A DNA stretch of 64,000 nt from Pristiophorus japonicus (Eukaryota): contig NC_091986.1 of NCBI RefSeq assembly GCF_044704955.1, positions 41,354,001 to 41,418,000 of the forward strand, in the 5' to 3' direction. A model generated the notes under the pieces. That model saw only the letters and a program-made list of their open reading frames with translations. It did not search any database and had not been told where the DNA came from. Numbering within the stretch: position 1 is the first letter of the stretch; the number at the start of each line of letters is the position of its first letter. Made by a program: the position numbers and the translations under genes. Below are positions 4,481 through 64,000 of this stretch, piece by piece.

Positions 4481-5470
4481 GAGTGAGAGAAAGCCGGGGG
4501 AAGGAGATAGAGAGCTGGGGGGGGGAAGGAGGGAGAGAGAGCCGGAGGGGAAGGAGGGACGGAGGGAGAGAGAGAGAGAGCCGGAGCGAGNNNNNNNNNN
4601 NNNNNNNNNNNNNNNNNNNNNNNNNNNNNNNNNNNNNNNNNNNNNNNNNNNNNNNNNNNNNNNNNNNNNNNNNNNNNNNNNNNNNNNNNNNNNNNNNNNN
4701 NNNNNNNNNNNNNNNNNNNNNNNNNNNNNNNNNNNNNNNNNNNNNNNNNNNNNNNNNNNNNNNNNNNNNNNNNNNNNNNNNNNNNNNNNNGGGAGAGGAG
4801 AGGGATGGGGGGAGAGAGGATAGAGGGGAGAGAGGAGTGGGGGGCAGAGAGGAGAGGAGGGGGCGGAGAGGAGGAGGGGGGGAGGGAGAGGAGAGGGGGG
4901 GAGAGGAGAGGGTGGGGGTACAGGAGAGGGAGCGGGGGGAGAGGAGGGGGAGAGGGGAGGGGGAGAGAGGGGAGAGAGGAGGGGGGAGAGAGGAGAGGAG
5001 AGGGAGGGGGGAGAGAGGTGGAGGGTGAGAGAGGGGGGGTGAGAGAGGAGAGCAGAGAGAGAGAGGGGGGCCGGGGGGGAGTGGACCAGACCGGACCTGG
5101 GGGGGGGGGGGGAGCGGGAGGTGGAGCCAGAGTGGAGCGGGAGTTGTGGGGGCGGGGGGGCGGGGGAGAGCGGCAGGCAGCGGAGCGTGAGCTGAACGGG
5201 GTGGGCAGGGGAATGCGGGAGAGAGCCGGACCAGGAGCGGGAGCTGGAGCTGAGGGTAGGGGGGGGAGGCGGGAGTGAGCCGGACCGGGAGCGGGAGCTG
5301 GGGGGGGCAGTGGGGGGTGCGGGAGAGAGAGCTGGACCGGGAGTGGGAGCAGGGGGGAGGGGGGACGGGAGAGAGCCGGACCAGGAGTGGGAGCTAAAGG
5401 GAGGGTGATGTGGGAGAAAGCCAGGGGCAGGGTGGGACGGTGGGAGCCGGAGCAGGAGCTGAAGAGGAGG
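4480..5470. repeat. GA/G-rich low-complexity tract containing a 200-N assembly gap (4591-4790)
   Basis: Visible directly. Includes degenerate GAGAGCCGGACCAGGAGCGGGAGCT units. Confidence 0.95.
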
Positions 5471-13630: not shown

Positions 13631-15385
13631 TTAGGGTGAATTTATAATGGGAAACAAAGAAATGGCAGACCAATTGAACAAATAACCTTCCGGAAATACT
13701 AGGGTCTAGCGAAAAGGAGGAACTGAAGGAAATCCTTAGTAGTCAGGAAATTGTGTTAGGGAAATTGATGGGATTGAAGGCCAATAAATACCCAGGGCCT
13801 GATAGGCTGCATCCCAGAGTACTTAAGGAAGTGGACCTAGAAATAGGGGATGCATTGGTGATCATTTTCTAACATTCTATTGACTCTGGATCAGTTCCTA
13901 TGGATTGGAGGGTAGCTAATGTAACCCCACTTTTTAAAAAAGGAGGGAGAGAGAAAACGGGGAATTATAAACCGGTTAGCCTGACGTCGGTGGTGGGGAA
14001 AATGTTGGAATCAATTATTAAAGATGAAATAGCAGCGCATTTAGAAAGCAGTGACAGGATCGGTCCAAGTCAGCATGGATTTATGAAAGGGAAGTCATGC
14101 TTGACAAATCTTCTAGAATTTTTTGAGGATGTAACTAGTAGAGTGGACAAGGGAGAACCAGTGGATGTGATGTATTTGGACTTTCAAAGGGCTTTTGACA
14201 AGGTCCCACACAAGAGATTAGTGTGCAAAATTAAAGCACATGGTATTGGGGGTAATGTATTGACGTGGATAGAGAACTGGTTGACAGACAGGAATCAGAG
14301 AGTCGGAATAAACGGGTCCTTTTCAGAATGGCAGGCAGTGACTGGATCAACAGTGCTGCAGGCTTCAGTGCTGGGACCCCAGCTATTTACAATATACATT
14401 AATGATTTAGATGAGGGAATTGAATGTAATATGTCCAAGTTTGCAGATGACACTGAGCTGGGTGGCGGTGTGAGCTGTGAGGAGGATGCTAACAGACTGC
14501 GGGGTGACTTGGACAAGTTCGGTGAGTGGGCAAATGCATGGCAGATGCAATATAATGTGGATAAATGTGAAGTTATCCATTTTGGTGGCAAAAACAGGAA
14601 GACAGAATATTATCTGAATGGTGACAGATTAGGAAAAGGGGAGGTGCAACGAGACCTGGGTGTCATGGTACATCAGTCATTAAAGTTTGGCATGTAGGTA
14701 CAGCAGGCGGTGAAGAAGGCAAATGGCATGTTGGCCTTCATAGCTAGAGGATTTGAATATAGGAGCAGAGAGGTTTTACTGCAGTTGTACAGAGCCTTGG
14801 TGAGGCCACACCTGGAATATTGTGTTCGGTTTTGGTTCCCATTAATCTGAGGAAGGACGTTCTTGCTATTGAGGGAGTACAGCGAAGGTTCACCAGATTG
14901 ATTCCTGGGATGGCAGGACTGACATATGAGGAGAGACTGGATCAACTGGGCTTGTATCCACTGGAGTTTAGAAGAATGAGAGGGGATCTCATAGAAACAT
15001 ATAAAATTCTGACGGGATTGGTCAGGTTAGAGGCAGGAAGAATGTTCCCGTTGCTAGGGAGTTCCAGAACCAGGGGTCATAGTCTAAGAATAAGGGGTAA
15101 GCTATTTAGGACCGAGATGAGGAGAAAGTTTTTCACTCAGACCGTGGTTAACCTGTGGAATTCTCTACCACAGAAAGTTGTTGAGGTCAGTTTGTTAGAT
15201 ATATTCAAAAGGGAGTTAGATATGGCCCTTACAGCCAAAGGGATCAAGGGGTATGGAGAGAAAGAAGGAAAGGGGTACTGAGGTTGAATGATCAGCCATG
15301 ATCTTATTGAATGGCGCAGTGCAGGCTTGAAGGGCCGAATGGCCTGTTCCTGCACCTAATTTCTTTGTTTCTATGTTTCTATGTT
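13631..15385 (+). mobile_element. 5'-truncated CR1 LINE (RT region), degraded
   Basis: ORFs 13900-14697 and 14820-15281 (PLFKKG, QHGF, YLDF..AFDKVPH, FADD) and a (TTCTATG)n tail. Confidence 0.92.
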
Positions 15386-17364: not shown

Positions 17365-19576
17365 TCATCATCATAGGCAGTCCCTCGGAGTCGAGGAAGA
17401 CTTGCTTCCACTCTAAAAGTGAGTTCTCAGGTAATTGAGGAATCCAATGTGGGACCTACAGTCTCTGTCACAGGTGGGGCAGACAGTGGTTGAAGGAAAG
17501 GTTGGGTGGAGAGTCTGGGTTGATACACGCTCCTTCCGCTGTCCACGCTTGGTTTCTGCTTTTTCTCGGCGATGGGACTCAAGGTGCTCAGCGCCCTCCC
17601 TGATGTTCTTCCTCCACTTTGGGCGGTCGTGGGCCAGGGATTCCTAGGAGTTGGTGGGGGGTGGGAATGTTGCACTTTGTCAAGGAGGCTTTAAGGGTGT
17701 CCTTGAAGCGTTTCCTCTGCCCATCTGGGGCTCACCTGCTGTGTCGAAGCTCCGCATAGAGTTTTTGTTTTGGGAGTCTCGTGTCAGGCATGCGGACGAT
17801 GTGGCCCTCCCAACGGAGCGGATCAAGTGTGGTCAATGCTTCGATGCTGGGGATGTTGGCCTGAGGGAGATCACTGACGTTGGTGCATCTGTCCTGCCAA
17901 TGGATTTGCAGGATCTTGCAGAGGCAGCACTGGTGGTACTTCTCCAGTGTTTTGAGGTGTCTGCTGTATATAGTCATGTCTCTGAGCCATATAGGAGGGC
18001 AGATATCACTACTGCCCTGTAGACCATGAGTTTGGTGCCGGATTTGAGGTCCTGGTCTTCAAACACTCTCTTCCTCAGGCAACCGAAGGCTGCGCTGGTG
18101 CACTGAAGGCAGTGTTGGACCTTGTTGTCAATGTTTGCCCTTGCTGACAGTAGGCTCCTGAGGTATGGAAAATGGTCCATGTTGTCCAAGGCCTCGTCGT
18201 GGATTTTGATATTCGGGGGTCAGTGTTGTGTGGTGGGATCAGGTTGGTAGAGGACCTTTGTCTACGTTTAGCGTAAGGCCCATGCTTCCGTACGCCTCGG
18301 TGAAGGTGTTGACGATGGCTTGGAGTTTGGCCTCAGAGTGTGCGCGGATGCAAGCATCGTCTGCGTACTGTCGTTCAATGACAGAGGATGGGACGAACTT
18401 GGAGGCAGCGGAGGTTGAACAGATTCCCATCTGTTCTATAATTTAGCTCCACTCCGGCGGGGAGCCAGCTAAGGGTCAGATGTAGCATTGCAGCAAGGAA
18501 GATTGAAAAGAGCGTTGGTGCGATGATGCAGCCTTGCTTGACCTCAGTCCGGATGTGGATTGGGTCTGTGGTGGATCGATTGGTCAGGATCACGGCTTGC
18601 ATATCAGCGTGGAGCAGACGGAGGATGGTGACAAACTTTTGGGGACAGCCAAAACGGAGGAGGACACTCCATAATCCCTCATGGTTGACAGTGTCAAAGG
18701 CCTTTGTGAGGTCAAAGAAGGCCATGTACAAGGGTTGGTGCTGTTCACTGCATTTCTCTTGTAGTTGTCGCGCGGTGAAGATCATGACTGTTGCACCCCT
18801 TAGTGGACGGTATCTGCATTGTGACTCTGGGAGGAGCTCTTCAGCCATAGGGAGAAGACGATTGAGGAGGATTCTTGCAATGATTTTCCCTGTGGTCGAC
18901 AACAGGGAGATTCCTCTGTAGTTACCGCAGTCGGACTTGTCCCCTTTTTTGAAGGTGGTTACGATTATGGCATCCCTGAGATCTCCTGGCATGCTCTTCT
19001 CCTTCCAAATAAAGAGAAATGAGGTCATGTATTCGTGCCAAAAGTGCTTCTCCACCATGCTTTAGTGCTTCGGCGGAATTTCATTTGCTCCTGTTGCCTT
19101 GTTATTCTTCAGCTGATGGATGGCCTTTTCTACCTCGTGCCGGGCTGGGATGGTGGCAGGTAGCATGCTGCGGGATGGAGTTGAGGGCACTCGCGTCTTA
19201 GACAGAGTCTCGATTAAGGAGATCTTCGAAATGCTCCTTCCAACGGGCACTGACTGCCTCTGTCCTTGATGAGTACCTCACCGTTCTTGGCCAGCAGTGG
19301 GGTAGGGCCTTGGGTGCTTGGGCCATAGTGGTCTTGACTGCGCTGAAGAATCCACGCACGTCATGGTTGTCGGCTAACTGCGGAATCACCTGTGCTTTCT
19401 CCACCCACCATCTGTTTTTCAGGTCACTGTTTTTTTTGTTGGACCTCGCCCTTCAGCCGTCTGTAGAGCTACTTTCTTGTTCTCAAGTTGTGTTGCTGTT
19501 TTAAGTTTCAGAAATGCCTTGCACTTGTGGCTAACTAGCTCCTGGATCTCCTGGACGTTCTCGTCGAACCAGTCTT
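17365..19576 (-). mobile_element. RTE-clade (BovB-like) LINE, 5'-truncated and degraded
   Basis: Motifs KKGDKSDCGNYRGISLLS, AFFDLTKAFDTV, QYADD, LLYGSET and RLPKQ. (CAT)n tail at 17365. Confidence 0.92.
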
Positions 19577-28071: not shown

Positions 28072-29019
28072 ATGGCAGGAGAGCTCGGTCGGGTGTTATG
28101 CTCCTCTTGTACCATGTGGGAACTCAGGGACGACACCAGTGTCCCTGACGACTATATCTGCAGGAAGTGTATCCACCTCAAGCTCCTGACGGTCCGCGTT
28201 GCGGAGTTGGAGCTGAGGGTGGATTCACTCTGGAGCATCCACGATGCTGAGAATGACGTGAGTATCACGTGTAGCGAGTTGGTCGTACCGCAGGGAAAGG
28301 GTCCACAGCCAGATAGGGAATGGAAGACCAGCAGGAAGATCAGTGCAAGGAAGGTAGTGCAGGAGTCCCATGTGGTCATCCCCCTGAAAAACAGATACAC
28401 TGCTTTGGGTACTGTTGAGGGGGATGACTCATCGGGGGAGGGCAGCAGCAGCCAAGTTCATGGCACCATGGCTGGCACTGCTGCACAGGAGGGCAGGAAA
28501 AAAAGTGGGAGAGCAATAGTGATTGGGGATTCAACGGTGAGGGGAATAGATAGGCGTTTCTGCGGCCGCAACCGAGACTCCAGGATGGTATGTTGCCTCC
28601 CTTGTGCAAGGGTCAAGGATGTCTCGGAGCGGGTGCAGGACATTCTAAAAAGGGAGGGAGAACAGCCAGTTGTCGTGGTGCACATTGGTACCAACGACAT
28701 AGGTAAAAAAAGGGATGAGGTCCTACGAAACGAATTTAAGGAGCTAGGAGCTAAATTAAAAAGTAGGACCTCAAAAGTAGTAATCTCAGGATTGCTACCA
28801 GTGCCACGTGATAGTCAGAGTAGGAATCGCAGGATAGCGCAGATGAATACGTGGCTTGAGCAGTGGTGCAGCAGGGAGGAATTCAAATTCCTGGGGCATT
28901 GGAACCGGTTCTGGGGGAGTTGGGACCAGTACAAACCGGACGGTCTGCACCTGGGCAGGACCGGAACCAATGTCCATGGGGGAGTGTTTACTAGTGCTGT
29001 TGGGGAGGATTTAAACTAA
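28072..29019 (+). CDS. CR1 ORF1p (zinc finger/leucine zipper plus SGNH esterase), intact, 315 aa
   Basis: CSSC..CRKC, heptad leucines, GDS, HIGTND and DGLH motifs. Confidence 0.92.
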   Translation: MAGELGRVLCSSCTMWELRDDTSVPDDYICRKCIHLKLLTVRVAELELRVDSLWSIHDAENDVSITCSELVVPQGKGPQPDREWKTSRKISARKVVQESHVVIPLKNRYTALGTVEGDDSSGEGSSSQVHGTMAGTAAQEGRKKSGRAIVIGDSTVRGIDRRFCGRNRDSRMVCCLPCARVKDVSERVQDILKREGEQPVVVVHIGTNDIGKKRDEVLRNEFKELGAKLKSRTSKVVISGLLPVPRDSQSRNRRIAQMNTWLEQWCSREEFKFLGHWNRFWGSWDQYKPDGLHLGRTGTNVHGGVFTSAVGEDLN

Positions 29020-29096: not shown

Positions 29097-32003
29097 ATGA
29101 GGAAAAGTGGAGGGCACAGAAACCCAAGGCAAAGAACAAAAAGGGCCACTGTACAGCAAAATTCTAAAAGGACAAAGGGTGTTAAAAAAACAAGCCTGAA
29201 GGCTTTGTGTCTTAATGCAAGGAGTATCCGCAATAAGGTGGATGAATTAACTGTGCAAATAGATGTTAACAAATATGATGTGATTGGGATTACGGAGACG
29301 TGGCTCCAGGATGATCAGGGCTGGGAACTCAACATCCAGGGGTATTCAACATTCAGGAAAGATAGAATAAAAGGAAAAGGAGGTGGGGTAGCATTGCTGG
29401 TTAAGGAGCAAATTAAGGCAATAGTTTGGAAGGACATTAGCTTGGATGATGTGGAATCTATATGGGTAGAGCTGCAGAATACCAAAGGGCAAAAAACGTT
29501 AGTGGGAGTTGTGTACTGACCTCCAAACAGTAGTAGTGATGTTGGGGAGGGCATCAAACATGAAATTAGGGGTGCGTGCAATAAAGGTGCAGCAGTTATA
29601 ATGGGTGACTTTAATATGCACATAGATTGGGTTAACCAAACTGGAAGCAATACGGTGGAGGAGGATTTCCTAGAGTGCATAAAGGATGGTTTTTTAGACC
29701 AATATGTCGAGGAACCAACTAGGGGGGAGGCCATCTTAGACTGGGTGTTGTGTAATGAGAGAGGATTAATTAACAATCTCGTTGTGCGAGGCCCCTTGGG
29801 GAAGAGTGACCATAATATGGTGGAATTCTGCATTAGGATGGAGAATGAAACAGTTAATTCAGAGACCATGGTCCAGAACTTAAAGAAGGGTAACTTTGAA
29901 GGTATGAGGCGTGAATTGGCTAGGATAGATTGGCGAATGATACTGAAGGGGTTCACTGTGGATGGGCAATGGCAGATATTTAGAGACCGCATGGATGAAC
30001 TACAACAATTGTACATTCCTGTCTGGCGTAAAAATAAAAAAGGGAAGGTGGCTCAACCGTGGCTATCAAGGGAAATCAGGGATAGCATTAAAGCCAAGGA
30101 AGTGGCATACAAATTGGCCAGAAATAGCAGCGAACCCGGGGACTGGGAGAAATTTAGAACTCAGCAGAGGAGGACAAAGGGTTTGATTAGGGCAGGGAAA
30201 ATGGAGTACGAGAAGAAGCTTGCAGGGAACATTAAGACGGATTGCAAAAGTTTCTATAGATATGTAAAGAGAAAAAGGTTAGTAAAGACAAACGTAGGTC
30301 CCCTGCAGTCAGAATCAGGGGAAGTCATAACGGGGAACAAAGAAATGGCGGACCAATTGAACAAGTACTTTGGTTCGGTATTCACTGAGGAGGACACAAA
30401 CAACCTTCCGGATATAAAAGGGGCCGGAGGGTCTAGTAAGGAGGAGGAACTGAGGGAAATCCTTATTAGTCGGGAAACTGTGTTGGGGAAATTGATGGGA
30501 TTGAAGGCCAATAAATCCCCAGGGCCTGATGGACTGCATCCCAGAGTACTTAAGGAGGTGGCCTTGGAAATAGTGGATGCATTGACAGTCATTTTCCAAC
30601 ATTCCATTGACTCTGGATCAGTTCCTATGGAGTGGAGGGTAGCCAATGTAACCCCACTTTTTAAAAAAGGAGGGAGAGAGAAAACAGGGAATTATAGACC
30701 GGTCAGCCTGACATCGGTAGTGGGTAAAATGATGGAATCAATTATTAAGGATGTCATAGCAGTGCATTTGGAAAGAGGTAATATGATAGGTCCAAGTCAA
30801 CATGGATTTGTGAAAGGGAAATCATGCTTGACAAATCTTCTGGAATTTTTTGAGGATGTTTCCAGTAAAGTGGACAAGGGAGAACCAGTTGATGTGGTAT
30901 ATTTGGACTTTCAGAAGGCTTTCGACAAGGTCCCACACAAGAAATTAATGTGCAAAGTTAAAGCACATGGGATTGGGGGTAGTGTGCTGACATGGATTGA
31001 GAACTGGTTGTCAGACAGGAAGCAAAGAGTAGGGGTAAATGGGGACTTTTCAGAATGGCAGGCAGTGACTAGTGGGGTACCGCAAGGTTCTGTGCTGGGG
31101 CCCCAGCTGTTTACACTGTACATTAATGATTTAGACGAGGGGATTAAATGTAGTATCTCCAAATTTGCGGATGACATTAAGTTGGGTGGCAGTGTGAGCT
31201 GCGAGGAGGATGCTATGAGGCTGCAGAGCGACTTAGATAGGTTAGGTGAGTGGACAAATGCATGGCAGATGAAGTATAATGTGGATAAATGTGAGGTTAT
31301 CCACTTTGGTGGTAAAAACAGAGAGACAGACTATTATCTGAATGGTGACAGATTAGGAAAAGGGAAGGTGCAAAGAGACCTGGGTGTCATGGTACATCAG
31401 TCATTGAAGGTTGGCATGCAGGTACGGCAGGCGGTTAAGAAAGCAAATGGCATGTTGGCCTTCATAGCGAGGGGATTTGAGTACAGGGGCAAGGAGGTGT
31501 TGCTACAATTGTACAGGGCCTTGGTGAGGCCACACCTGGAGTATTGTGTACAGTTTTGGTCTCCTAACCTGAGGAAGGACATTCTTGCTATTGAAGGAGT
31601 GCAGCGAAGGTTCACCAGACTGATTCCCGGGATGGCGGGACTGACCTATCAAGAAAGACTGGATCAACTGGGCTTGTATTCACTGGAGTTCAGAAGAATG
31701 AGAGGGGACCTCATAGAAATGTTTAAAATTCTGACGGGGTTAGACAGGTTAGATGCAGGAAGAATGTTCCCAATGTTGGGGAAGTCCAGAACCAGGGGAC
31801 ACAGTCTAAGGATAAGGGGGAAGCCATTTAGGACCGAGATGAGGAGGAATTTCTTCACCCAGAGAGTGGTGAACCTGTGGAATTCTCTACCACAGAAAGT
31901 TGTTGAGGCCAATTCACTAAATATATTCAAAAAGGAGTTAGATAAAGTCCTTACTACTAGGGGAATCAAGGGGTATGATGAGAAAGCAGGAATGGGATAC
32001 TGA
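29097..32003 (+). pseudogene. CR1 ORF2p (APE endonuclease and RT) with a single in-frame stop
   Basis: ORFs 29097-29519 and 29601-32003 share a frame. The TGA at 29517-29519 replaces the R of YRPP. Motifs NARS, TETW, GDFN, SDH and FADD are present. Confidence 0.92.
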
Positions 32004-35000
32004 AGTTGCATGTTCAGCCATGAACTCATTGAATGGCGGTGCAGGCTAGAAGGGCCGAATGGCCTACTTCTGCACCTATTTTCTATGTTTCTATGTTTCT
32101 AGTTTGGTGTCGATCTTTGTGAGTTTTGGTCTGTTGCTTTTGTGCGACCACAGCTGTTCAAATTGTTGAAGGCTCATGAGGGATTGACTGGCCCCCATGT
32201 CCATTTCCATGTTGACGGGTATCCCATTGAGTAGAACCCTCATCATAATTAGAGGCGTCTTGGTGTAAGAACAGTGGACATTGATCGTGTTAACCCGCTG
32301 TAGCTCGGCGTCCCATGCACTGTTCCAATCGTCTTCTGGTCCGCTTTCCGACCCTTCCGATTCATATACCAGCCGAGCTGCTGTTTTTCTGCACATGCGA
32401 GCCAGATGTCCTGTGTAGTTGCAGTTTCTGCAAACGGCATGCTGAAATCGACACACCCCGGTTGAGTGCCTTCCCCCACATCTCCAACACAGACCGTTTC
32501 CATTGTTTCCGAAGGATGAGCTGCGACTGGCTGATCTCCCTTGAGATTCTCTCAATCTATTGTTGATTGCTCGCATTGTGGGTTGATGAGGTGTGATCAG
32601 CCATTCATGTGGCCCTTGATTTTGATGGCTTCTGGCGGCACTGTCTGCTGTTGAAGGCCTGCTCTCCTGCCTTTGTCTGTGTGTGGGGGTAGCGGTTTGT
32701 TTCACAATGTGAACCCCTTGTTCCGATGCCTCGTTGGTTGTTGTACCCGAAGTATAGATCAGCCTCGTTTCTTCTTCGCCTGCCAAGAACGTCTGTGCGA
32801 CCAGTGCTGCTGCCTCTAGAGTCAAGTTCTTAGTCTCTATAAGCTTTCGGAATGTGCCAGCGTGGCCTATTCCTTCAATAAGAAAGTTTCTCAGTACTTC
32901 TCTCCTTAGTTCATCGGGGAACTGACATGAACTAGCCAGCCTCCGAAGTTCCGCCACGAAGTCGGGTATGCTTTGGCCCACACAGCGTCTGTAGTTGTAG
33001 AACCTGTGTCTGGCCATGTGTAGGCTGCTCGCTGGCTTCAGGTGGTCTCTCACCAGTGTGCTCAACTCCTCAAACAACTAGCTTGCTGGTTTCTCGGGTG
33101 CCAGCAGGTCTTTCATTAAAGCGTATGTTTTCGAGCCACAGCTGGTCAAAAGATGGGCTCTTCTCTTGTCTGCCTTATCGTCACCCAGCCAGTCTTTGGT
33201 CACAAAGCTTTGCTGGAGCCTTTCTATTAAGTCATCCCAATTGTCTCCAGCATAGTATTTCTCATCTGAGCTGTTGGTAGCCATTCTGTGGATTCTGTGA
33301 TCCCGTAATTCGTCGCCACTGTTAAGTCCTGATTCTAATGTACTGACTTACATGAGACACATGCTGAAGTCAAGGTCACTCAGGACCTGCACCTTTAATT
33401 CCAACTCTCCAGTGCTGCACTTGCCTGAGACCTCCCTTTATATACCTCGTGGGACAGGTATGGAGTGTCTCTTGCAAGTGCACCCCTGGTGGTAAGGTAT
33501 GCTTATTGTTACAAGTCATATCCAGTTACAGTCATGTATAGCATGGTAAGATACAGTTATATACAGTAATGTGAGATACATGACAATGTCCATACAGGCG
33601 GACTGTCTTTTGTGGGGTAATCGCGTGGTTTTACCCAAGAAAGGCAGGGAAATGTTCATACGCGACCTACACAGTACCCACCTAGGCATAGTAATGATGA
33701 AAGCTATAGCCAGATCCCATGTGTGGTGGCCCGGCATCGACTCAGATTTGGAGTCTTGCGTGCACCAATGCAACACTTGCTTTCAACTGAGCAATGTACC
33801 CAGGGAGGCACCGCTAAGTTTGTGGTCATGGCCCTCCAAACCGTGGTCTCGGATCCACGTTGACTTCGCTGGCCCGTTTCTTGGCAAAATGTTCTTGGTA
33901 GTTGTGGATGCTTATTCAAAGTGGATTGAGTGTGTAATAATGTCTGTAAGCACGTCCACTGCCACCATCGAAAACCTACGAGCCATGTTTGCCATGCACG
34001 GCCTGCCTGATGTCCTTGTCAGCGACAACGGGCCATGCTTCACCAGCGCTGAATTCAAGGAATTCATGACCTGCAATGGGATCAAGCATGTCACATCTGC
34101 CCCGTTCAAGCCCGCATCCAATGGCCAGGCAGAACGGGCAGTCCAAACCATCAAGCAAAGCTTGAAACGCATGTCAGAAGGCTCCCTGCAGACCCGAGTC
34201 CTGCTCAGCTACCGCACCAGACCCCACTCGCTCACTGGGGTTCCCCCAGCCGAGCTGCTCATGATAAGGGCATGCAAAACAAGGCTCTCTCTCGTCCACC
34301 CTGATCTCCAGGATCACGTCGAGGGCAGGCGGCATTAACAAAGCATATACCATGATCGCGCAAATTTGTCACGCGACGTGTATTTGTACTCAACTATAGA
34401 CATGGTCCCAAATGGCTTGCTGGCACTGTCATAGCCAAAGAAAGGAGTAGGTTGTTTCAGGTCAAACTCGCAAATAGACTAACTTGCAGAAAGCATTTGG
34501 ACCAAACCAAACTGCGATTCACAGACAGCCACGAGCAACCTGAAGAGGACACCACCAACTTTGACCCTCCGACACACACACAAGTGGCAACCGACATCAT
34601 GGCTGACCACGAAGCTGAACGCATCATCCCCAGCAGCCTAGCAAGACCAACTATGCAGCAGCCCAGCGAAGAACCAACCAACTCACCTGCACCTGCATTT
34701 GTACGGAGACGATCGACTAGGGAGCGCAAAGCCCCAGGTCGTCTCATCCTGTAAATAAGTTGACTTTGGAAGAGAGTGATGTTATGTATGCAACCCTATG
34801 TAACCAGCAGTCTATCGCCACCAGAGGGCATATCTGCTGGAGTCCTAACGGATCCCAGCATCCCTTGGAAGCACTGTATATAAGCAGGCCTCCCATGCTG
34901 TACCAGCACTCTGGAGTTAGAATAAAGAGACTAAGGTCACACTTACTCACGCCTACAGTACTCAATCACGTTACTTTATTCTGTACATAACACCTCCATC

Positions 35001-35772
35001 TATGATCAGGCGGCAACCCAATTTAGGAAAAGGCTGGACGATATCATTTGTTTGATGAAAGTGAATACCTGTTCTACCAAATACTCACCTTCCATCTGCG
35101 AATCTCTCCTTCATCCTTCTCTTATTTCCCACTTTCACTCTTTAGTCACTGACGCAGCATTTCATTGCTGAGGCCTATATATATTGTGTGTGCGAGTTTG
35201 CAATGGAAGCCCTCTCATCTCACATTTACAGCTGCATGTCACGGACACACAACCTAGGACGGTAGGGCCTCCTCGCCTTTCCTCTCCACACCCGGGGACC
35301 CTCTAATTTCGTGGCCAAGATGGATAAAAAGTTTTTCTACATACATCACAGAGGTATGTGCTGGGCCCCTATCATGCCAGCTGGATGAGCACCTTCTCCC
35401 TCTTCCTCATCATATTGTGGAGCCTCTGCAGGCTGCTGCTGGCAAGGCTCTGTTGTGTTCATACTCTATTTGTTTGTTACAGCTCACAGAACGGGCATTA
35501 GGACCCTGCGGGAGCTATTCACAGTTGCTGTAAACAAGCTAATTCAGGCTGGCTTGGAGACACCATTTTGGGTTGTTGTCTAAAGCACACGGTTTAAATT
35601 ACTTTTCTTCTGGCTCAGTTTGTCAGTTATTTACGCATACACAACATAATTTGGCGACAAGGATGATTCAATTAACCTTGCCTTTCCTCTCCACACCCGG
35701 GGACCCTCTAATTCTGTGGCCGAGATGGATAAAAGGTTTTTCTACATACATCACGGTGAGTGAGTTAGACAG

Positions 35773-38700
35773 TGTAAAGTCCTGTCCCTCACATGAGGCA
35801 CATGCTGAAGTCAAGGTCACTCAGGACCTGCACCTTTATTACACAGCTCTCAAATGCCACACTTGCCTGAGACTTGTCCCTATATATCTGTCTGGGACAG
35901 GTATCCAGTGTCTCCTGCAAGTGCACCCCTGGTGGTAAGGTAAGCTAGTGGTTACAGGTCATCTCTAGTTACAGTCATGTATAGCATGGTAAGATACAGT
36001 TATGGCCAGTAGTGTGAGATACATGACATCACCCTCCCCCAAGGTCTTACTGTCTTTATAGGTTCAGTCTCTCAGATGGTCTATGGTCTTGCGTGGAGCG
36101 TCTTAGTTGTTTGCCTTGGTGCCTGTTTTGCTTTCGGTGTGATTGCTGATATCTCGCCTGGGATGTCTGTTTCGTTCAGTATGATTGTTGGTGTCTGTTG
36201 GGATTGCCCTTTCCTCAGGTTGTTCCCTCTGTCTGTCCACCAGGTGTGGTGTGAGTTCCACATTGTAGTCTGCTTCTGGTTCAGCAGTGTTGTTGGTAAA
36301 TCTACTTTTGACTTGGTCTACATGCCTCCGGCAGGTTTGACCATTGTCCATTTGTACCACCAGTAGCCTGTTTCCTTCCTTGCCTGTTACTGTCCCTGCA
36401 AGCCATTTGGGACCCCTGCCATAGTTTAGCACAAACACTTTGTCCCCTATCTCATTCCACCTCCCCCTCAAATTTCGGTCATGGTACTCAGTTAGCTTAC
36501 GGCGCTTTACCTCAACGATTTCATGCATGTCTGGGAGGATTAATGAGAGCCTTGTCTTTAAGGTCCGTTTCATCAATAGTTGCCCGGGGGGAATTCCAGT
36601 CAATGAATGCAGACGAGATCTGTATGCCAGCAGCAGGCGCGACAGGCGGCCCTGCAGCGTGGGACCTTGGATTCTGAGCATGCATTGTTTAATGATCTGC
36701 ACTGCTCGCTCCACCTGGCCGTTGGAGGCCAGCTTGTACGGTGCCGTCCTAATGTGATTTATGCCGTGGTCACTCATAAAATCTTGGAATTCTGCGCTGG
36801 TGAAGCACGGACCATTATCACTGACCAATATGTCAGGAATGCCGTGCGTTGCGAACATGGTTCCAAGGCTCTCCACAGTGGTGGAGGTGGTGCTCAGGTT
36901 TAAAATGGTGCATTCGATCCACTTTGAAAATGCATCTACAACTACGAGGAACATTTTGCCCATGGATGGGCCCACATAGTCTACATGCATCCGCGACCAC
37001 GGTTTCGTGGGCCACGGCCAGGGGCTCAGGGGAGCCTCCCTGATGGCATTACTGAGTTGGGCACAAATAGTGCACCGTCGGATGCAGAGCTCCAAGTCCG
37101 CGTCAATGCCAGGCCACCAGACATGGGATTTGGCTATGGCCTTCATGAGAACGATCCTCGGGTGCTCGCGGTGGAGCTCCCGGACAAATGCCTCTCTGCC
37201 TTGCAGAGGCATGACTACTCGGCTGCCCCACATCAGGCAGTCTGCTTGTAGTGACAGCTCATGCATGCGCCTATGGAAAGGTTTGATCTCCTCGGGTCAG
37301 GCATCGCGAGCCTCTGCCCAGTCACCGGTTAAGACACAACTTTTTACTAGGGATAACGTGGGGTCGCTGGTCGTCCAGGCTCTGATTTGGTGAGCCGTCA
37401 TGGGCGAACCTGTGGACTCAAAGGCATTGATTGTCATGACCATCTCACAGTCCTGTTCGTCAGACCCTTCCGTGGTTGCCAGGGGTAGCCTGCTAAGCGC
37501 ATCGGCACAGTTGTCTGTGCCTGGTCTGTGCCTTATGGTGTAATCGTAAGAGGCCAGCATGAGTGCCCACTGTTGAATGCGCGCCGAGGCGTTGCCGTTT
37601 ATTGGCTTGCTCTCAGATAGTAGGGACGTGAGGGGCTTGTGGTCGGTTCGAATGCGAACTTGGCCCCGAAAAGGTATTGGTGCATCTTTTTGACACCATA
37701 CACGCACGCGAGCCATTCCGTACCCGCGCTCCACCCGCGAAAGTGACCTGGAGGCCTAAGCTATGGGTTGTAATTTACCCGCACTATTGACATGTTGTAA
37801 AACGCACCCGACCCCGTACGCTGACGCATCACATGTAAGAACTAGCTTTTTACCTGGATCAAAGAAAGCCAAAACACTGTTGGAACACAGAAGGTTGCGT
37901 GCCTTATTGAAGGCGCGTTCCTGGGCATCCCCCCAAAACCAATCACACCCCTTTCTGAGAGGCTCCAGCAGCGTGCTTAAGTTCTGCATAAAGTTCCCAA
38001 AGTAATTAAGTAGCCCGAGAAAGGCGCTCAGTTCTGAGACATTCCGGGGCCTGGGTGCCAGACGAATTGCTTCGGTTTTGGACTCTGTTGGGCGGATTCC
38101 ATCAGCAGCAATCCTTCTGCCCAAAAATTCAACCTCGAGGGCGAGAAACAGGCACTTGGATTTCTTAACTCTTACGCCTACCCGATCCGACTGCTTTAGT
38201 ACTTCTCCAAATTGCAGAGATGGGAGTCGGTGTCCCTGCCCGTGATAAGTATGGGCTCAAGTCCCCGGGATGGACTTGAGCAGACTCTCCATGTTGCGCT
38301 AAAATATAGCAGCTGCCGACCTGATGCCGTATGGGCATCGATTGTACATGAAAAGGCCTCGATGTGTGTTGATGGTGGTGAGTAGCTTAGACTCGTCGGT
38401 CAATTCTTGCGTCATATAAGCAGATGTGAGATCTAGTTTTGAGGAAAGTTTTCCTCCAGCCAATGTGGCAAATAAGTCCTCCACTCTGGGCAGCGGGTAT
38501 TGGTCTTGTAGGGAGACTCTGTTTATGGTAGATTTGTAGTCCCCACAGATTTGTACAGATCCATCAGGCTTCATGACTGGGACGATGGGACTTGCCCAGT
38601 CGCTAAATTCCACGGGTGAGATAATGCCTTTCCGCAGAAGCCTGTCCAGTTCATATTCAATCTTGTCCCTCATCACATAGAGCACAGCTCTTCCCTTGTG

Positions 38701-41005: not shown

Positions 41006-43197
41006 CATAGAAACATAGAACATAGAAAATAGGTGCAGGAGTAGGCCATTCGGCCCTTCGAGTCTGCACCGCCATTCAATGAGATCATGGCTGAACATGC
41101 AACTTCAGTACCCCATTCCTGCTTTCTCGCCATACCCCTTGATCCCCCTAGTAGTAAGGACTACATCTAACTCCTTTTTGAATATATTTAGTGAATTGGC
41201 CTCAACAACTTTCTGTGGTAGATAATTCCACAGGTTCACCACTCTCTGGGTGAAGATGTTTCTCCTCATCTCGGTCCTAAATGGCTTACCCCTTATCCTT
41301 AGACTGTGACCCCTGGTTCTGGACTTCCCCAACATTGGGAACATTCTTCCTGCATCTAACCTGTCTAAACCCGTCAGAATTTTAAACGTTTCTATGAGAT
41401 CCCCTCTTATTCTTCTGAACTCCAGTGAATACAAGTCCAGTTGATCCAGTCTTTCTTGATATGTCAGTCCCGCCATCCCGTGAATCAGTCTGGTGAACCT
41501 TCGCTGCATTCCCTCAATAGCAAGAATGTCCTTCCTCAAGTTAGGAGACCAAAACTGTACACAATACTCCAGGTGTGGCCTCACCAAGGCCCTGTACAAC
41601 TGTAGCAACACCTCCCTGCCCCTGTACTCAAATCCTCTCGCTATGAAGGCCAACATACCATTTGCCTTCTTAACCGCCTGCTGTACCTGCATGCCAACCT
41701 TCAATGACTGATGTACCATGACACCCAGGTCTCGTTGCACCTCCCTTTTTCCTAATCTGTCACCATTCAGATAATAGTCTGTCTCTCTGTTTTTACAACC
41801 AAAGTGGATAACCTCACATTTATCCACATTATACTTCATCTGCCATGCATTTGCCCACTTACCTAACCTATACAAGTCACTCTGCAGCCTCATAGCATCC
41901 TTCTCGCAGCTCACACTGCCACCCAACTTAGTGTCATCCGCAAATTTGGAGATACTGCATTTAATCCCCTCGTCTAAATCATTAATGTACAATGTAAACA
42001 GCTGGGACCCCAGCACAGAACCTTGCGGTACCCCATTAGTCACTGCCTGCCATTCTGAAAAGTACCCATTTACTCCTACTCTTTGCTTCCTGTCTGCCAA
42101 CCAGTTCTCAATCCATGTCAGCACGCTACCCCCAATCCCATGTGCTTTAACTTTGCACATTAATCTCCTGTGTGGGACCTTGTCGAAAGCCTTCTGAAAG
42201 TCCAAATGCACCACATCAACTGGTTCTCCCTTGTCCACTCTACTGGAAACATCCTCAAAAAATTCCAGAAGATTTGTCAAGCATGATTTCCCTTTCACAA
42301 ATCCATGCTGACTTGGACCTATCATGTCACCTCTTTCCAAATGCGCTGCTATGACATCCTTAATAATTGATTCCATCATTTTACCCACTACCGATGTCAG
42401 GCTGACCGGTCTATAATTCCCTGTTTTCTCTCTCCCTCCTTTTTTAAAAAGTGGGGTTACATTGACTACCCTCCACTCCATAGGAACTGATCCAGAGTCT
42501 ATGGAATGTTGGAAAATGACTGTCAATGCATCCGCTATTTCCAAGGCCACCTCCTTAAGTACTCTGGGATGCAGACCATCAGGCCCTGGGGATTTATCGG
42601 CCTTCAATCCCATTAATTTCCCCAACACAATTTCCCGACTAATAAAGATTTCCCTCAGTTCCTCCTTCTTACTAGACCCTCTGACCCTTTTTATATCCGG
42701 AAGGTTGTTTGTGTCCTCCTTAGTGAATACCGAACCAAAGTACTTGTTCAATTGGTCTGCCATTTCTTTGTTCCCAGTTATGACATCCCCTGATTCTGAC
42801 TGCAGGGCACCTACGTTTGTCTTTACTAACCTTTTTCTCTTTACATATACATAGAAGCTTTTGCAGTCTATTTTAATGTTCCCTGCAAGCTTCCTCTCGT
42901 ACTCCATTTTCCCTGCCCTAATCAAACCCTTTGTCCTCCTCTGCTGAGTTCTAAATTTCTCCCAGTCCCCGGGTTCACTTCTATTTCTGGCCAATTTGTA
43001 TGCCACTTCCTTGGCTTTAATACTATCCCTGATTTCCCTTGATAGCCACGATGGAGCCACCTTCCCTTTTTATTTTTATGCCAGACAGGGATGTACAATT
43101 GTTGTAGTTCATCCATGAGGTCTCTAAATGTCTGCCATTGCCCATCCACTGTCAACCCCTTAAGTATCATTCACCAATCTATCCTAGCCCATTCACG
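41006..43197 (-). mobile_element. 5'-truncated young CR1 LINE inserted in the gag of Gypsy D
   Basis: 651-aa RT ORF at 41105-43060, nearly identical to the CR1 at 29601-32003. CATAGAAA tail. Confidence 0.95.
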
Positions 43198-51184: not shown

Positions 51185-53600
51185 ACATAAGGACATAAGG
51201 ACATAAGGACCAGGAGTAGGCCATCTAGCACCTCGAGCCTGCTCCGCCATTCAACAAGATCATGGCTGATCTGGCCGTGAACTCAGCTCCACTTACCCGC
51301 CCGCTCCCCATAACCCTCAATTCCCTTATTGGTTAAAAATTTATCTATCTGTGACTTGAATACATTCAATGAGCTAGCCTCAACTGCTTCCTTGGGCAGA
51401 GAATTCCACAGATTCACAACCCTCTGGGAGAAGAAATTCCTTCTCAACTCGGTTTTAAATTGGCTCCCCCGTATTTTGAGGCTGTGCCCCCTAGTTCTAG
51501 TCTCCCCGACCAGTGGAAACAACCTCTCTGGCTCTATCTTGTCTATCCCTTTCATTATTTTAAATGTTTCTATAAGATCACCCCTCATCCTTCTGAACTC
51601 CAACAAGTAAAGAAGACCCAGTCTACTCAATCTATCATCATAAGGTAACCCCCTCATCTCCGGAATCAGCCTAGTGAATCGTCTCTGTACCCCCTCTAAA
51701 GCTAGTATATCCTTCCTTCAGTAAGGTAACCAAAACTGCACGCAGTACTCCAGGTGCGGCCTCACCAATACCCTGTACAGTTGCAGAAGGACCTCCCTGC
51801 TTTTGTACTCCATCCCTCTCGCAATGAAGGCCAACATTCCATTCGCCTTCCTGATTACCTGCTGCACCTGCAAACTAACTTTTTGGGATTCATGCACAAG
51901 GACCCCCAGGTCCCTCTGCACCGCAGCATGTTGTAATTTCTCCCCATTCAAATAATATTCCCTTTTACTGTTTTTTTTCCCAAGGTGGATGACCTCACAC
52001 TTTCCGACATTGTATTCCATCTGCCAAACCTTAGCCCATTCGCTTAACCTATCTAAATCTCTTTGCAGCCTCTCTGTGTCCTCTACACAATCCGCTTTCC
52101 CACTAATCTTTGTGTCATCTGCAAATTTTGTTACACTACACTCTGTCCCCTCTTCCAGGTCATCTATGTATATTGTAAACAGTTGTGGTCCCAGCACCGA
52201 TCCCTGTGGCACACCACTAACCACCGATTTCCAACCCGAAAAGGATCCATTTATCCTGCTTTCTGTTAGCCAGCCAATTCTCTATCCATGCTAATACATT
52301 TCCACTGACTCCGCGTACCTTTATCTTCTGCAGTAACCTTTTGTGTGGCACCTTATCGAATGCCTTTTGAAAATCTAAATACACCACATCCATCGGTATA
52401 CCTCTATCCACCATGCTCGTTATATCCTCAAAGAATTCCAGTAAATTAGTTAAACATGATTTCCCCTTCATGAATCCATGCTGCGTCTGTTTGATTGCAC
52501 TATTCCTATCTAGATGTTCTGCTATTTCTTCCTTAATGATAGTTTCAAGCATTTTCCCCACGACAGATGTTAAACTAACCGGCCTATAGTTACCTGCCTT
52601 TTGTCTGCCCCCTTTTTTAAACAGAGGCGTTACATTAGCTGCTCTCCAATCCGCTGGTACCTCCCCAGAGTCCAGAGAATGTTGGTAGATTATAACGAAT
52701 GCATCTGCTATAACTTCCGCCATCTCTTTTAATACCCTGGGATGCATTTCATCAGGACCAGGGGACTTGTCTACCTTGAGTCCCATTAGCCTGTCCAGCA
52801 CTACCCCCCTAGTGATAGTGATTGTCTCAAGGTCCTCCCTTCCCACATTCCTGTGACCAGCAATTTCTGGCATGGTTTCTGTGTCTTCCACTGTGAAGAC
52901 TGAAGCAAAATAATTGTTTACGGTCTCAGCCATTTCCACATTTCCCATTATTAAATCCCCCTTCTCATCTTCTAAGGAAGGGACCAACATTTACTTTAGT
53001 CACTCTTTTCCATTTTATATATCTGTAAAAGCTTTTACTATCCGCTTTTATGTTTTGCGCAAGTTTACCTTCGTAATCTATCTTTCCTTTCTTTATTGCT
53101 TTCTTAGTCATTCTTTGCTGTCGTTTAAAATTTTCCCAATCTTCTATTTTCCCACTAACCTTGGCCACCTTATACGCATTGGTTTTTAATTTGATACTCT
53201 CCTTTATTTCCTTGGTTATCCACGGCTGGTTATCCCTTCTCTTACTGCCCTTCTTTTTCACTGGAATATATTTTTGTTGAGCACTATGAAAGAGCTCCTT
53301 AAAAGTCCTCCACTGTTCCTCAATTGTGCCACCATTTAGTCTGTGTTTCCAGTCTACTTTAGCCAACTCTGCCCTCATCCCACTGTAGTCCCCTTTGTTT
53401 AAGCATAGTACGCTCGTTTGAGACACTATTTCCTCACCCTCAATCTGTATTACAAATTCAACCATACTGTGATCACTCATTCCGAGAGGATCTTTTACTA
53501 GATCGTTTATTATTCCTGTCTCATTACACAGGACCAGATCGAAGATAGCTTGCTCCCTTGTAGGTTCTGTAACATACTGTTCTAAGAAACAATCCCGTAT
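51185..53600 (-). mobile_element. 5'-truncated CR1 LINE of another subfamily
   Basis: ORF2 pieces at 53480-51283 with frameshifts and a (CATAAGGA)3 tail. Confidence 0.93.
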
Positions 53601-57935: not shown

Positions 57936-58484
57936 ATCTCCTCAGTACTATATTTTCCCATCCCTGGTATCACCCTGATGAATCTATACTCTCTATGGCT
58001 TTAATGTCCTTTCTATAAAGGAGCATCCAAAACTTTACATAATACTCTTAAGCCTAGTCTAGCCAGTCTTTTGTACAAATTGATCACCATTGTTTTACTG
58101 TTACTCTTATGCCCCTATTTATAAAGAAAAAGAACTTGCATTTATATAGTGCCGTTCACATCCTCAGGACATCCCAAAGTTCTTCACAACCAATGATGTA
58201 CTTTTGGAGTGTAGTCACTGCTGTAATTTGGGCAGCCAATTGTGCACAGCAAGATCCCATAAACAACAATGGCTTAAATGATCAGATAAATGAGGTGAAT
58301 TTCCATTGGCTCCCAATCACCCATCATCATTTTGGATGAAGAGCCACAGAAACCCCAGAAATAATGATTTGCGGTGTACGAACTGATGGGTTTTGTTGAA
58401 GGAAAACATTCTAATAATTAATTCCATTGCCATCTGAATATCCTAATCAACAGACTTCAACCCCTGTGTTTTTTCTTGTTGCAG

Positions 58485-58524
58485 GAAGAAGACAGTTTGT
58501 GTACAAAATTGAAGTACAGTAACA
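58485..58524 (+). CDS. Possible small upstream exon of the deaminase gene (EEDSLCTKLKY..)
   Basis: Strong acceptor TTTTTTCTTGTTGCAG|. The donor is uncertain; several weak phase-1 GT sites are compatible with the next exon. Confidence 0.3.
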
Positions 58525-58646
58525 GTAATTCCATAAGTGGTCGAGGACCATTGCTGTTCAGGCTGCTATTGCCCCACCTCCTGAATTCATTATAAATTGG
58601 ATATAGTCAATGATTTTGTTGAACTAGCTCTTCCTATCCTTCCTAG

Positions 58647-59248
58647 AAACAACCTTAAAGTCTGTAGATTTAATTACTGAAGGCAAAATGCCTTTGTACT
58701 TGAGACAACAAGTGGCTAAAAGTATCTTCTATGAGGGATTTGATACTAATACAAAACCACACTTCACTTTACTTTGCTTCCTACTGAAGCAAAACAACAA
58801 CATATTATTTGACCTGTGGGGCTACGCTATGAATAATCTAAAGGGAAACCATGCAGAAGAATTAGTCATAAATAAAATGGAAAACTATTTAGTGGAAAAT
58901 ATTTCTCCCAATACAGAAAAATACACGGTTACCTATTATCTTTCTTATAACCCTTGTGATCACTGCTGTTGCCGTATAATAGATTTCCATGAAAAATTCA
59001 AGAACAAAATTAACATGAGCATAAAGGTGTCAAGAAAATACTATCTTCAAGATCGCAATGTCCAGCATTCCCTGGGGGATCTTTCGAAGAGAGATATTTC
59101 CATTAAGGTGATGGATGGAAAGGATTTTGCCGAGTGCTATTATTTGTTTGTGGAGGATGGTCACACAGCAGCCTTCGAACCATGGCATGATTTGGATGAA
59201 TATTATGAGTGCTTCTCAAAAGAACTGGCGAATCTCTTGGACCTTCCG
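58647..59248 (+). CDS. AID/APOBEC-family zinc-dependent cytidine deaminase, catalytic exon (NAD1-like/APOBEC1-like)
   Basis: Uninterrupted frame with TLLCF (beta1), WGYAMN, NHAEE (HxE), VTYYLSYNPCDHC (PCxxC), SRKYY (loop 7), IKVMDGKDFAECYYLFV and FEPW. Acceptor TTCCTATCCTTCCTAG| at 58646, in-frame ATG at 58688, and likely donor CCG|GTACAT at 59248. Confidence 0.9.
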
Positions 59249-59407
59249 GTACATGTAAAACATTACATATTATATAGAATAGCTGTGTATATGAGTCATG
59301 AAAGGCAAGCAAGTGGGGATGGAGTAGACAGAGAAAGGTGGGGGGTGGGGGGCGTGTTGGAGAGGTAACTGTTGGAAACACAAAGAAATGAGGAAAGGCA
59401 AGAGTGT

Positions 59408-59635
59408 AGGAAACAACAACTTACATTTATATAGCACCTTTAACATAGTAAAATGTCCAGAGGCACTTCACAGACGCGTTATCAGACAGACATTTGACAC
59501 CAAGCCATATAAGGAGATATTAGGACAGGTGACCAAAAGCTCGGTCAAAGAGGTAGGTTTTAAGGAGCAACATAAAAGAGGAGGTAGAGGCAGAGAGATT
59601 TAGGAAGGGAAATCCAGAGCTTGGGCCCTAGACAA
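59408..59635 (-). mobile_element. L2 3' end
   Basis: AACAACAACTTACATTTATATAGCACC..GGTCAAAGAGGTAGGTTTTAAGGAG. Confidence 0.75.
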
Positions 59636-59999
59636 AAGGTGTGAGTGTATGGTGAGAGGAAAGGATTAATAGGAGGGAAAGAGGGACTAAAAGGGTGGGT
59701 AGGTAGGGTGGGTTGAGTTATTGATAAAAGCCTAAATCCAGAATCTATCAGGTTGTTATAACAAGGTGATCACAAATTCTGCTTGGATCATGTTTCAAAC
59801 ATTGTACTGCTTTCTTATGGGCCTACATAAGATTTGATTGCTTTTGGGTTAATGTATGACTTTTGTTTTCTCATCTGTTCAAAATCCCAAATTGTGCAGA
59901 ATAGACCTTCTGAATTAACCAATTAAATCAGATGGCTGCAAAATTGAAAGCATTTGAAAAAAGTCACATAAACCTTTTCTTGTTCTCTAATTTGCTCAG

Positions 60000-60048
60000 A
60001 GTGAAGAAACGGAAGCTGATGGTGAAGTCCGAAATAGAGTGAACTCAG
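60000..60048 (+). CDS. Putative downstream exon of the deaminase gene (SEETEADGEVRNRVNS)
   Basis: Polypyrimidine acceptor CTTTTCTTGTTCTCTAATTTGCTCAG| and donor CAG|GTGAGA. Open in phase 0, matching the 59248 donor. Confidence 0.55.
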
Positions 60049-63785: not shown

Positions 63786-64000
63786 GCCCCTCGATGCTTC
63801 TCCGCCATTCAATAAGATCATGGCTGATCTGATCTTGGGCTCAGCTCCATTTGCCTGCCCATTCCCCATAACCCTTCACTCCCTTATTGCTCAAAAATCT
63901 ATCTCCACCTTTATTATATTCAATGACCCAGCCTCCACAGCTCTCTGGGGCAGAGAATTCCACAGATTTACAACCCTCTGAGAGAAGAAATTCCTCCTCA
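63786..64000 (-). mobile_element. CR1 3' end fragment
   Basis: Reverse complement of RNFFSQRVVNLWNSLP plus 3' UTR. Confidence 0.85.

Follow-up and report, generated by a model that had tools for sequence, protein, structure and literature searches.

The window analysed here, a stretch of 64,000 nucleotides from the genome of the sawshark Pristiophorus japonicus (contig NC_091986.1 of assembly GCF_044704955.1, positions 41,354,001 to 41,418,000 of the forward strand), contains towards its end a long open exon encoding a deaminase of the AID/APOBEC type. An earlier note, made from the letters of the sequence, had proposed that this exon is intact and possibly NAD1-like. The locus raises the question of which deaminase family the gene belongs to, and of whether it is a working gene or one of the many relics of its neighbourhood. 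All coordinates given below are positions in the window.

The candidate family has been described under several names. NAD1 has been listed for ray-finned fishes, coelacanth, amphibians, lizards and marsupials, a listing from which sharks are absent (Krishnan et al., 2018); earlier reviews, including a 2013 paper, had placed the origin of APOBEC5 (A5) in amphibians, and it was the 2018 study that widened APOBEC5/NAD1 to ray-finned fish. An origin of A5 in the jawed-vertebrate ancestor has been claimed in a preprint, the A5 accessions of which are all from bony vertebrates (Tian et al., 2025); its Supplementary Table 1 assigns accessions from the Tasmanian devil, bichir, reedfish, arowana, Komodo dragon and paddlefish to A5, and the ghost shark is entered only under A2 and A4. 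The marsupial UA2 gene has been equated with APOBEC5 (Ito et al., 2020), and we infer that NAD1, APOBEC5 and UA2 are one family, the inclusion of NAD1 following from the common phyletic pattern and members. No report of a chondrichthyan NAD1 or A5 was found in the open-access literature.

Gene structure, transcription and surroundings

On the forward strand, an open frame spans from 58628 to a stop at 59368 and includes an ORF with an ATG (58688–59368, +), of which codons 1–187 (58688–59248) terminate at a GT splice donor. In three runs of one study (X9–X11), contigs identical to the window join 59248 to 60000, removing a GT..AG intron of 751 nt (59249–59999, +), and the unique parts of this intron have zero contig depth in the spliced runs. 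Because of this joint and the lack of depth in the unique intron sequence, the contigs derive from spliced RNA. The sawshark gene is transcribed and spliced; the transcripts that the earlier note had proposed to look for are thus present, and its placement of the 3′ end of the exon at 59248 is confirmed. Consisting of assembled contigs, this RNA evidence speaks to presence and splicing only, and neither to expression level nor to tissue.

The 5′ end of the exon had been placed at 58647, a position that is ruled out by contigs running across it unbroken. In X10 and X11, contigs begin, end or branch at 58483/58484, right after the acceptor ttgcAG, and in the third run one contig extends further upstream of this point. 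Since contigs cross 58647 and break directly after the acceptor, the exon starts at approximately 58485. The main exon of the sawshark APOBEC5/NAD1 gene (58485–59248, +), as delimited by the acceptor, the contigs and the joint from 59248 to 60000, therefore comprises a 5′ UTR (58485–58687, +; contigs and the acceptor ending at 58484) and a coding part of residues 1–187 (58688–59248, +), which holds the complete deaminase domain according to the ORF, Pfam, the match to the database protein P0003, AlphaFold2 and Foldseek.

The next coding exon (60000–60048, +) contributes residues 188–203 and one further base; it matches P0003 exactly, its acceptor and donor can be read directly and it is present in the spliced contigs. 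Its residues form the beginning of a disordered tail. Residues 1–203 encoded in the window are identical to P0003, which corresponds to UniRef UPI00398F7583, a P. japonicus protein of 270 amino acids publicly named 'APOBEC-3H-like isoform X1'. Residues 204–270 of this protein have no match anywhere within the 64 kb window, so that one or more terminal exons must follow after position 64000, and these tail residues are known from the database protein alone.

A second database isoform, X2 (P0002), consists of a 10-residue alternative N-terminus followed by a match to 58982–59248. The coding part of its alternative first exon (MDKRFFYIHH; 35725–35755, +), located as a 100% tblastn match with a readable ATG and GT donor, is spliced into an internal AG acceptor at 58980–58981 (+), giving a product without the catalytic centre. 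In X9, X10 and X11, contigs start or branch at 58981, which fits additional use of this internal acceptor. The ATG and first ten codons of isoform X2 are provided by the second copy of a 79 nt direct repeat, the two copies of which (35271–35349 and 35676–35754) are 94% identical and lie 405 nt apart.

The first intron or upstream region of the deaminase gene is full of LINE and LTR retroelements, with five reverse-transcriptase ORFs [13900–14697 (+), 18375–19058 (−), 29601–32003 (+), 41105–43060 (−) and 52217–52990 (−)] and two integrase ORFs [33571–34338 (+) and 36103–37266 (−)]. The earlier description of decayed surroundings can be kept in so far as it refers to this material, and is made specific by its identification as LINE and LTR retroelement ORFs. 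In such a neighbourhood the exon might itself be a transcribed pseudogene or a decaying relic, given the LINE and LTR debris all around it and an isoform X2 that begins in a repeat-derived exon. This is highly improbable, as the frame is open over 187 + 16 codons with canonical splice sites, and as both a hexanchiform shark, at 68% identity, and a chimaera, at 45–49% over the domain, have intact counterparts that keep all of the catalytic residues.

Some features of the window and of the RNA contigs stand apart from the gene itself. In run X1, which stems from a related organism, only intron and exon-3 sequence is covered, at 93–96% identity. In each of the four runs, that of the other organism included, a repeat at approximately 59376–59620 in the intron reaches contig word depths between some tens of thousands and about 180,000; it is probably a SINE-like element common to sharks. 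An ORF resembling a GDSL lipase/esterase (28072–29019, +), located just upstream of the 800-residue reverse-transcriptase ORF at 29601–32003, looks like the esterase-type ORF1 of a CR1/L2-like LINE. A run of 200 N at 4591–4790 marks an assembly gap or a masked stretch.

Deaminase domain and active site

The motifs read in the translation are LRQQVAKSIFYEGFD, WGYAMNN, HAEE, SYNPCDHCC, SRKYY and ISIKVM..F..C...FV....FEPW, and include every motif quoted in the earlier note. The zinc-binding and catalytic motif of the AID/APOBEC superfamily, H-x-E ... P-C-x(2-5)-C, is represented by HAE at residues 55–57 (58850–58858, +), with the zinc ligand H55, A56 and the catalytic E57, and by PCDHC at residues 89–93 (58952–58966, +), in which P89 is followed by the two zinc-ligand cysteines C90 and C93; both were read directly from the translation. 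Eleven deaminase-clan models of Pfam match the protein, the best with an E value of 6e-38. As the matches reach this value and the quoted motifs are all present, the ORF is not a chance ORF, and the proposal of an intact AID/APOBEC-like deaminase exon is borne out. Solved chains of APOBEC3G, 3F and 3H, APOBEC2 and AID match the query at E values from 1e-28 to 1e-12.

An AlphaFold2 model based on a 73-sequence alignment has pLDDT values above 90 for residues 1–185 and of 34–69 in the tail. The predicted model displays the five-strand, six-helix APOBEC deaminase fold of the superfamily, and a Foldseek search with it returned APOBEC3F/C, AID and APOBEC3A/B/G at a probability of 1.00 and TM scores of 0.79–0.86 (normalised to single-domain targets). 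The nearest solved folds are APOBEC3 domains of the Z2 type (APOBEC3F and APOBEC3C; PDB entries 4iou, 3vow and 5hx5), with a Foldseek E value of 1e-17 and TM scores of up to 0.85 (target-normalised), and with which the model shares the zinc centre and a well aligned C-terminal helix segment. In contrast to this structural proximity, the identity to these domains is 23–30%, they fall in another clade of the tree and the sawshark protein has a tyrosine in place of the tryptophan of SWSPC. Since APOBEC3 is confined to placental mammals, the public names 'APOBEC-3H-like' and 'APOBEC-3C-like' are misleading. AID resembles the sawshark protein in its fold (r.m.s.d. of 2.0–2.4 Å) and in a G-Y-x-x-N element ahead of H-x-E, but differs from it in sequence (24–27% identity) and in the AID-type C-terminus, which the sawshark protein does not have.

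In a 15-sequence A5 alignment, the residues H55, A56, E57, P89, C90 and C93, as well as T27, N49 and Y118, are invariant. Y87 of the sawshark protein sits where SWSPC has its tryptophan, a position that is aromatic in 14 of the 15 sequences. T27, N49 and Y118, and also Y87, presumably correspond to residues lining the cytosine pocket in the structures of AID and of APOBEC3A bound to DNA.

Family assignment

Comparison with Pfam models, which had been suggested as a means of classifying the protein, places it securely in the superfamily and leaves the choice of family to other methods. The sawshark protein scores 131.1 bits on the APOBEC2 model, above the 125.9 bits on NAD1 (PF18778; cut-off of 27), and 60 bits on APOBEC4. 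The A5 proteins of bichir, Komodo dragon and arowana also score higher on APOBEC2 than on NAD1, and salmon AID reaches about 200 bits on both models. Because the models treat established A5 proteins and AID in the same way, the top match to APOBEC2 is non-discriminating; the Pfam/NCBIfam clan models cannot separate the AID/APOBEC families.

Among 1.8 billion cluster representatives searched exhaustively with HMMER, the best matches include a protein from the sevengill shark Heptranchias perlo (XP_067842678; 68% identity). They further include a coelacanth protein with two domains, Callorhinchus milii A0A4W3GN99 (45–49% identity over the domain), Tasmanian devil XP_003765824 and proteins from gar, bichir, arowana, Komodo dragon and paddlefish. 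This list reproduces the phyletic pattern given for NAD1 by Krishnan et al. (2018).

Trees were calculated with IQ-TREE (LG+C20+F+G4, 74 domains) and FastTree (173 domains), with APOBEC4 sequences left out and with the outgroup clades labelled via solved structures (the P0117 group as APOBEC2, with 226 bits to 2nyt, P0080 as AID and P0083 as APOBEC1). In the IQ-TREE phylogeny the proteins of the sawshark, H. perlo and C. milii form a clade with a support of 100/99, which lies inside a 25-row APOBEC5 clade, likewise supported at 100/99, with a stem length of 0.84. The latter clade contains the published A5 accessions, as established by cross-checking, and its subclades of cartilaginous fish, ray-finned fish, coelacanth and tetrapods match the species tree; FastTree agrees with the placement. 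The NAD1-like identity proposed earlier is upheld by this position and by the presence of the tail motifs described below.

The N-terminus had previously been likened to that of APOBEC1. This affinity is not supported by the A5 alignment, in which the segment conforms to a common APOBEC5 N-terminal consensus, MPLxLxKxLxExxFYxxFNN, nor by the tree, in which clades other than APOBEC1 lie nearer.

A grouping with shark AID, APOBEC2 or APOBEC4 had been named, before any tree was calculated, as the outcome that would remove the novelty. Approximately unbiased (AU) tests reject the first two of these unions, that of the cartilaginous-fish trio with APOBEC2 at a ΔlnL of 63.9 (p = 4.9e-5) and that with AID at a ΔlnL of 90.4 (p = 2.2e-7). 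That the gene is shark APOBEC2, AID or APOBEC4 after rapid evolution, as an orthologue or as a duplicate, is exceedingly improbable. APOBEC2, which occurs in cartilaginous fish, does give the highest Pfam score, but the SSSPC and WEEPE signatures of the APOBEC2 clade are missing from the sawshark protein, which scores 60–67 bits against solved APOBEC2 compared with 226 bits for a true APOBEC2. APOBEC4 is ancient in jawed vertebrates and, like the sawshark protein, has a long disordered C-terminus, and A5 has been placed nearest to A4 by distance (Tian et al., 2025), the tree presented here being one without A4. On the APOBEC4 Pfam model, which served for this comparison, the 60 bits of the sawshark protein are fewer than those of AID and APOBEC1. 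Moreover, the protein nests with accessions that the tree of the preprint separates from the A2 and A4 of the ghost shark.

A further alternative takes the cartilaginous-fish genes for a separate chondrichthyan lineage of ancient paralogues that forms the sister group of APOBEC5. In the IQ-TREE phylogeny the A5 clade begins with a polytomy, and the identity of the sawshark protein to bony-vertebrate A5 is 28–36%, both of which would be compatible with such a paralogue. We nevertheless consider it very unlikely, since the A5 subclades match the species tree, the architecture of one domain plus a tail and both tail motifs are common to A5, and a second A5-like protein of these sharks was absent from the results of the homologue searches.

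The best explanation is therefore that the exon encodes the catalytic domain of the P. japonicus orthologue of APOBEC5 (NAD1/UA2), a 270-residue deaminase with a disordered tail, a reading to which we assign a probability of roughly 0.82. The gene is intact, transcribed and spliced, and its product is a member of the APOBEC5 clade with the fold and catalytic residues of a deaminase. Because A5 is carried by three species of cartilaginous fish, one of them a holocephalan, the family dates to the gnathostome ancestor, in agreement with the dating that the earlier note had made conditional on a chondrichthyan member. The lineages of the sawshark, the sevengill shark and the chimaera split hundreds of millions of years ago, and the intact ORFs and invariant catalytic residues in all three would indirectly indicate constraint on the gene.

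What is new in this assignment is the explicit attribution of cartilaginous-fish genes to APOBEC5/NAD1, which provides the first direct evidence for an age reaching back to the jawed-vertebrate ancestor; the sawshark gene and its sevengill and chimaera counterparts supply the cartilaginous-fish evidence that had been missing for this least-studied of the vertebrate AID/APOBEC families. The gene model was already public, and the APOBEC5 family and the DNA mutator function of its marsupial members were already known, so that the degree of novelty attributed to the locus at the outset was overstated; the result is incremental and does not reveal a new kind of system.

C-terminal tail, activity and distribution

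The sawshark protein shares with the other members of the family, for which Tasmanian devil XP_003765824 may serve as a reference, a single N-terminal domain followed by a disordered tail, and a spacing of conserved elements that can be written HAE-x3-[LI]-x24-SxxPC-xx-C-x6-F-x17-Y-x10-L-xx-L-x3-xx-x4-M. Compared with the published consensus of the A5 Z-domain, HAEx3Lx24SxSPCxxCx6Fx17Yx10LxxLx3GVx4M (residues more than 80% conserved), all spacings are kept, as are eight of the 11 conserved elements beyond the core; the substitutions are isoleucine for leucine, SYNPC for SxSPC and DI for GV. Many accepted A5 members also miss the strict pattern.

The C-terminus of A5 has been described as disordered, with conserved PxK and KRKL motifs (Tian et al., 2025), and the sawshark tail, of which residues 204–270 are encoded beyond the window, conforms to this description. 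It contains TPKK, TPEK and a terminal RRMLFK, which line up with the TPxK and VKRKLF motifs found elsewhere in the A5 family, RRMLF standing in place of the KRKLF of bony vertebrates; the tail of Heptranchias has TPKK, TPRK and a terminal RRTLFK. In a full-length alignment the shark motifs are in register with those of marsupial, frog, lizard and fish A5, and the tail, ending in a basic-x-L-F motif, is thus as old as the A5 enzyme. In a set of 194 proteins, the pair of TPxK and RRxLF-type motifs was found in 21 of the 45 members of the A5 clade, the other A5 models being mostly truncated, and in one of the 149 proteins outside it, this one being an A5 fragment.

The 270-residue protein combines a zinc-dependent domain of the polynucleotide cytidine deaminase type at its N-terminus (residues 1–185) with a tail bearing two TPxK sites and a terminal RRxLF. 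H55, C90 and C93 are predicted to hold a zinc-bound hydroxide and E57 to shuttle a proton, in a reaction like that of APOBEC3 and AID, by which cytosine in single-stranded DNA, or possibly RNA, would be converted to uracil. A5 proteins of the opossum and the Tasmanian devil have been reported to increase rifampicin-resistance mutation in E. coli and to restrict HIV-1 modestly, and it is because of these findings that deamination of single-stranded DNA is proposed here. Its most likely function would be C-to-U deamination of single-stranded DNA aimed at restricting retroviruses or retroelements; that the sawshark protein is enzymatically active is suggested by the ability of its marsupial orthologues to mutate E. 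coli DNA.

It is also conceivable, if unlikely, that a true APOBEC5-clade gene encodes here a protein that is inactive as a deaminase and binds nucleic acid or protein partners, as proposed for APOBEC2 and APOBEC4, for which reviews give no activity although their motifs are intact. The change from SWSPC to SYNPC and the altered loop 7 could point in this direction, as could the transcription of isoform X2, which is cut short at its N-terminus and lacks the catalytic centre. On the other hand, the zinc ligands, the catalytic glutamate, T27, N49 and Y118 are invariant throughout the aligned A5 proteins, the marsupial members are DNA mutators and the predicted model can be superposed on APOBEC3 and AID domains that are active. 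As a putatively active A5 enzyme, the sawshark protein is a very divergent single-domain deaminase and a candidate for base-editor work as well as for assays of the sequence contexts that it prefers, which may differ from those of its relatives given the altered loops 1 and 7, as the earlier note had suggested.

Judged from its motifs, the APOBEC5 tail looks like a cyclin–CDK docking and phosphorylation module, with two TPxK sites and, at the very end, [KR]RxLF, an arrangement kept from sharks to marsupials. With its weakened basic cluster, the shark RRxLF is a poorer example of a classical nuclear localisation signal, but would still constitute an RxL cyclin-docking motif. If the tail does have this role, the cell cycle would control when the A5 DNA mutator can act.

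Word-indexed homologue searches, for which the protein itself and a profile of 15 sequences served as queries, and HMMER found no further A5 proteins of sharks or rays. The restriction of A5 in the searched collections to squalomorph sharks and a chimaera hints at patchy retention, or may reflect annotation gaps. The propositions that the tail is a cyclin–CDK module and, separately, that A5 was perhaps lost in galeomorph sharks and rays are speculative, and we give them rather little credence.

Other deaminases encountered in the searches lie at the margins of this family or beyond it. A coelacanth protein of 344 amino acids (P0004; Latimeria chalumnae H3B7Z9) comprises two tandem APOBEC5-type domains, and is either a real double-domain A5 or the product of neighbouring genes fused in annotation. 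Sturgeon deaminases (P0078, P0093 and P0081; for example Huso huso KAK6468578) form a well supported clade, as do pipefish deaminases (P0097, P0021, P0041 and P0072), which have at least two domains per protein; in the IQ-TREE phylogeny both clades fall outside APOBEC5, APOBEC2, AID, APOBEC1 and APOBEC3.
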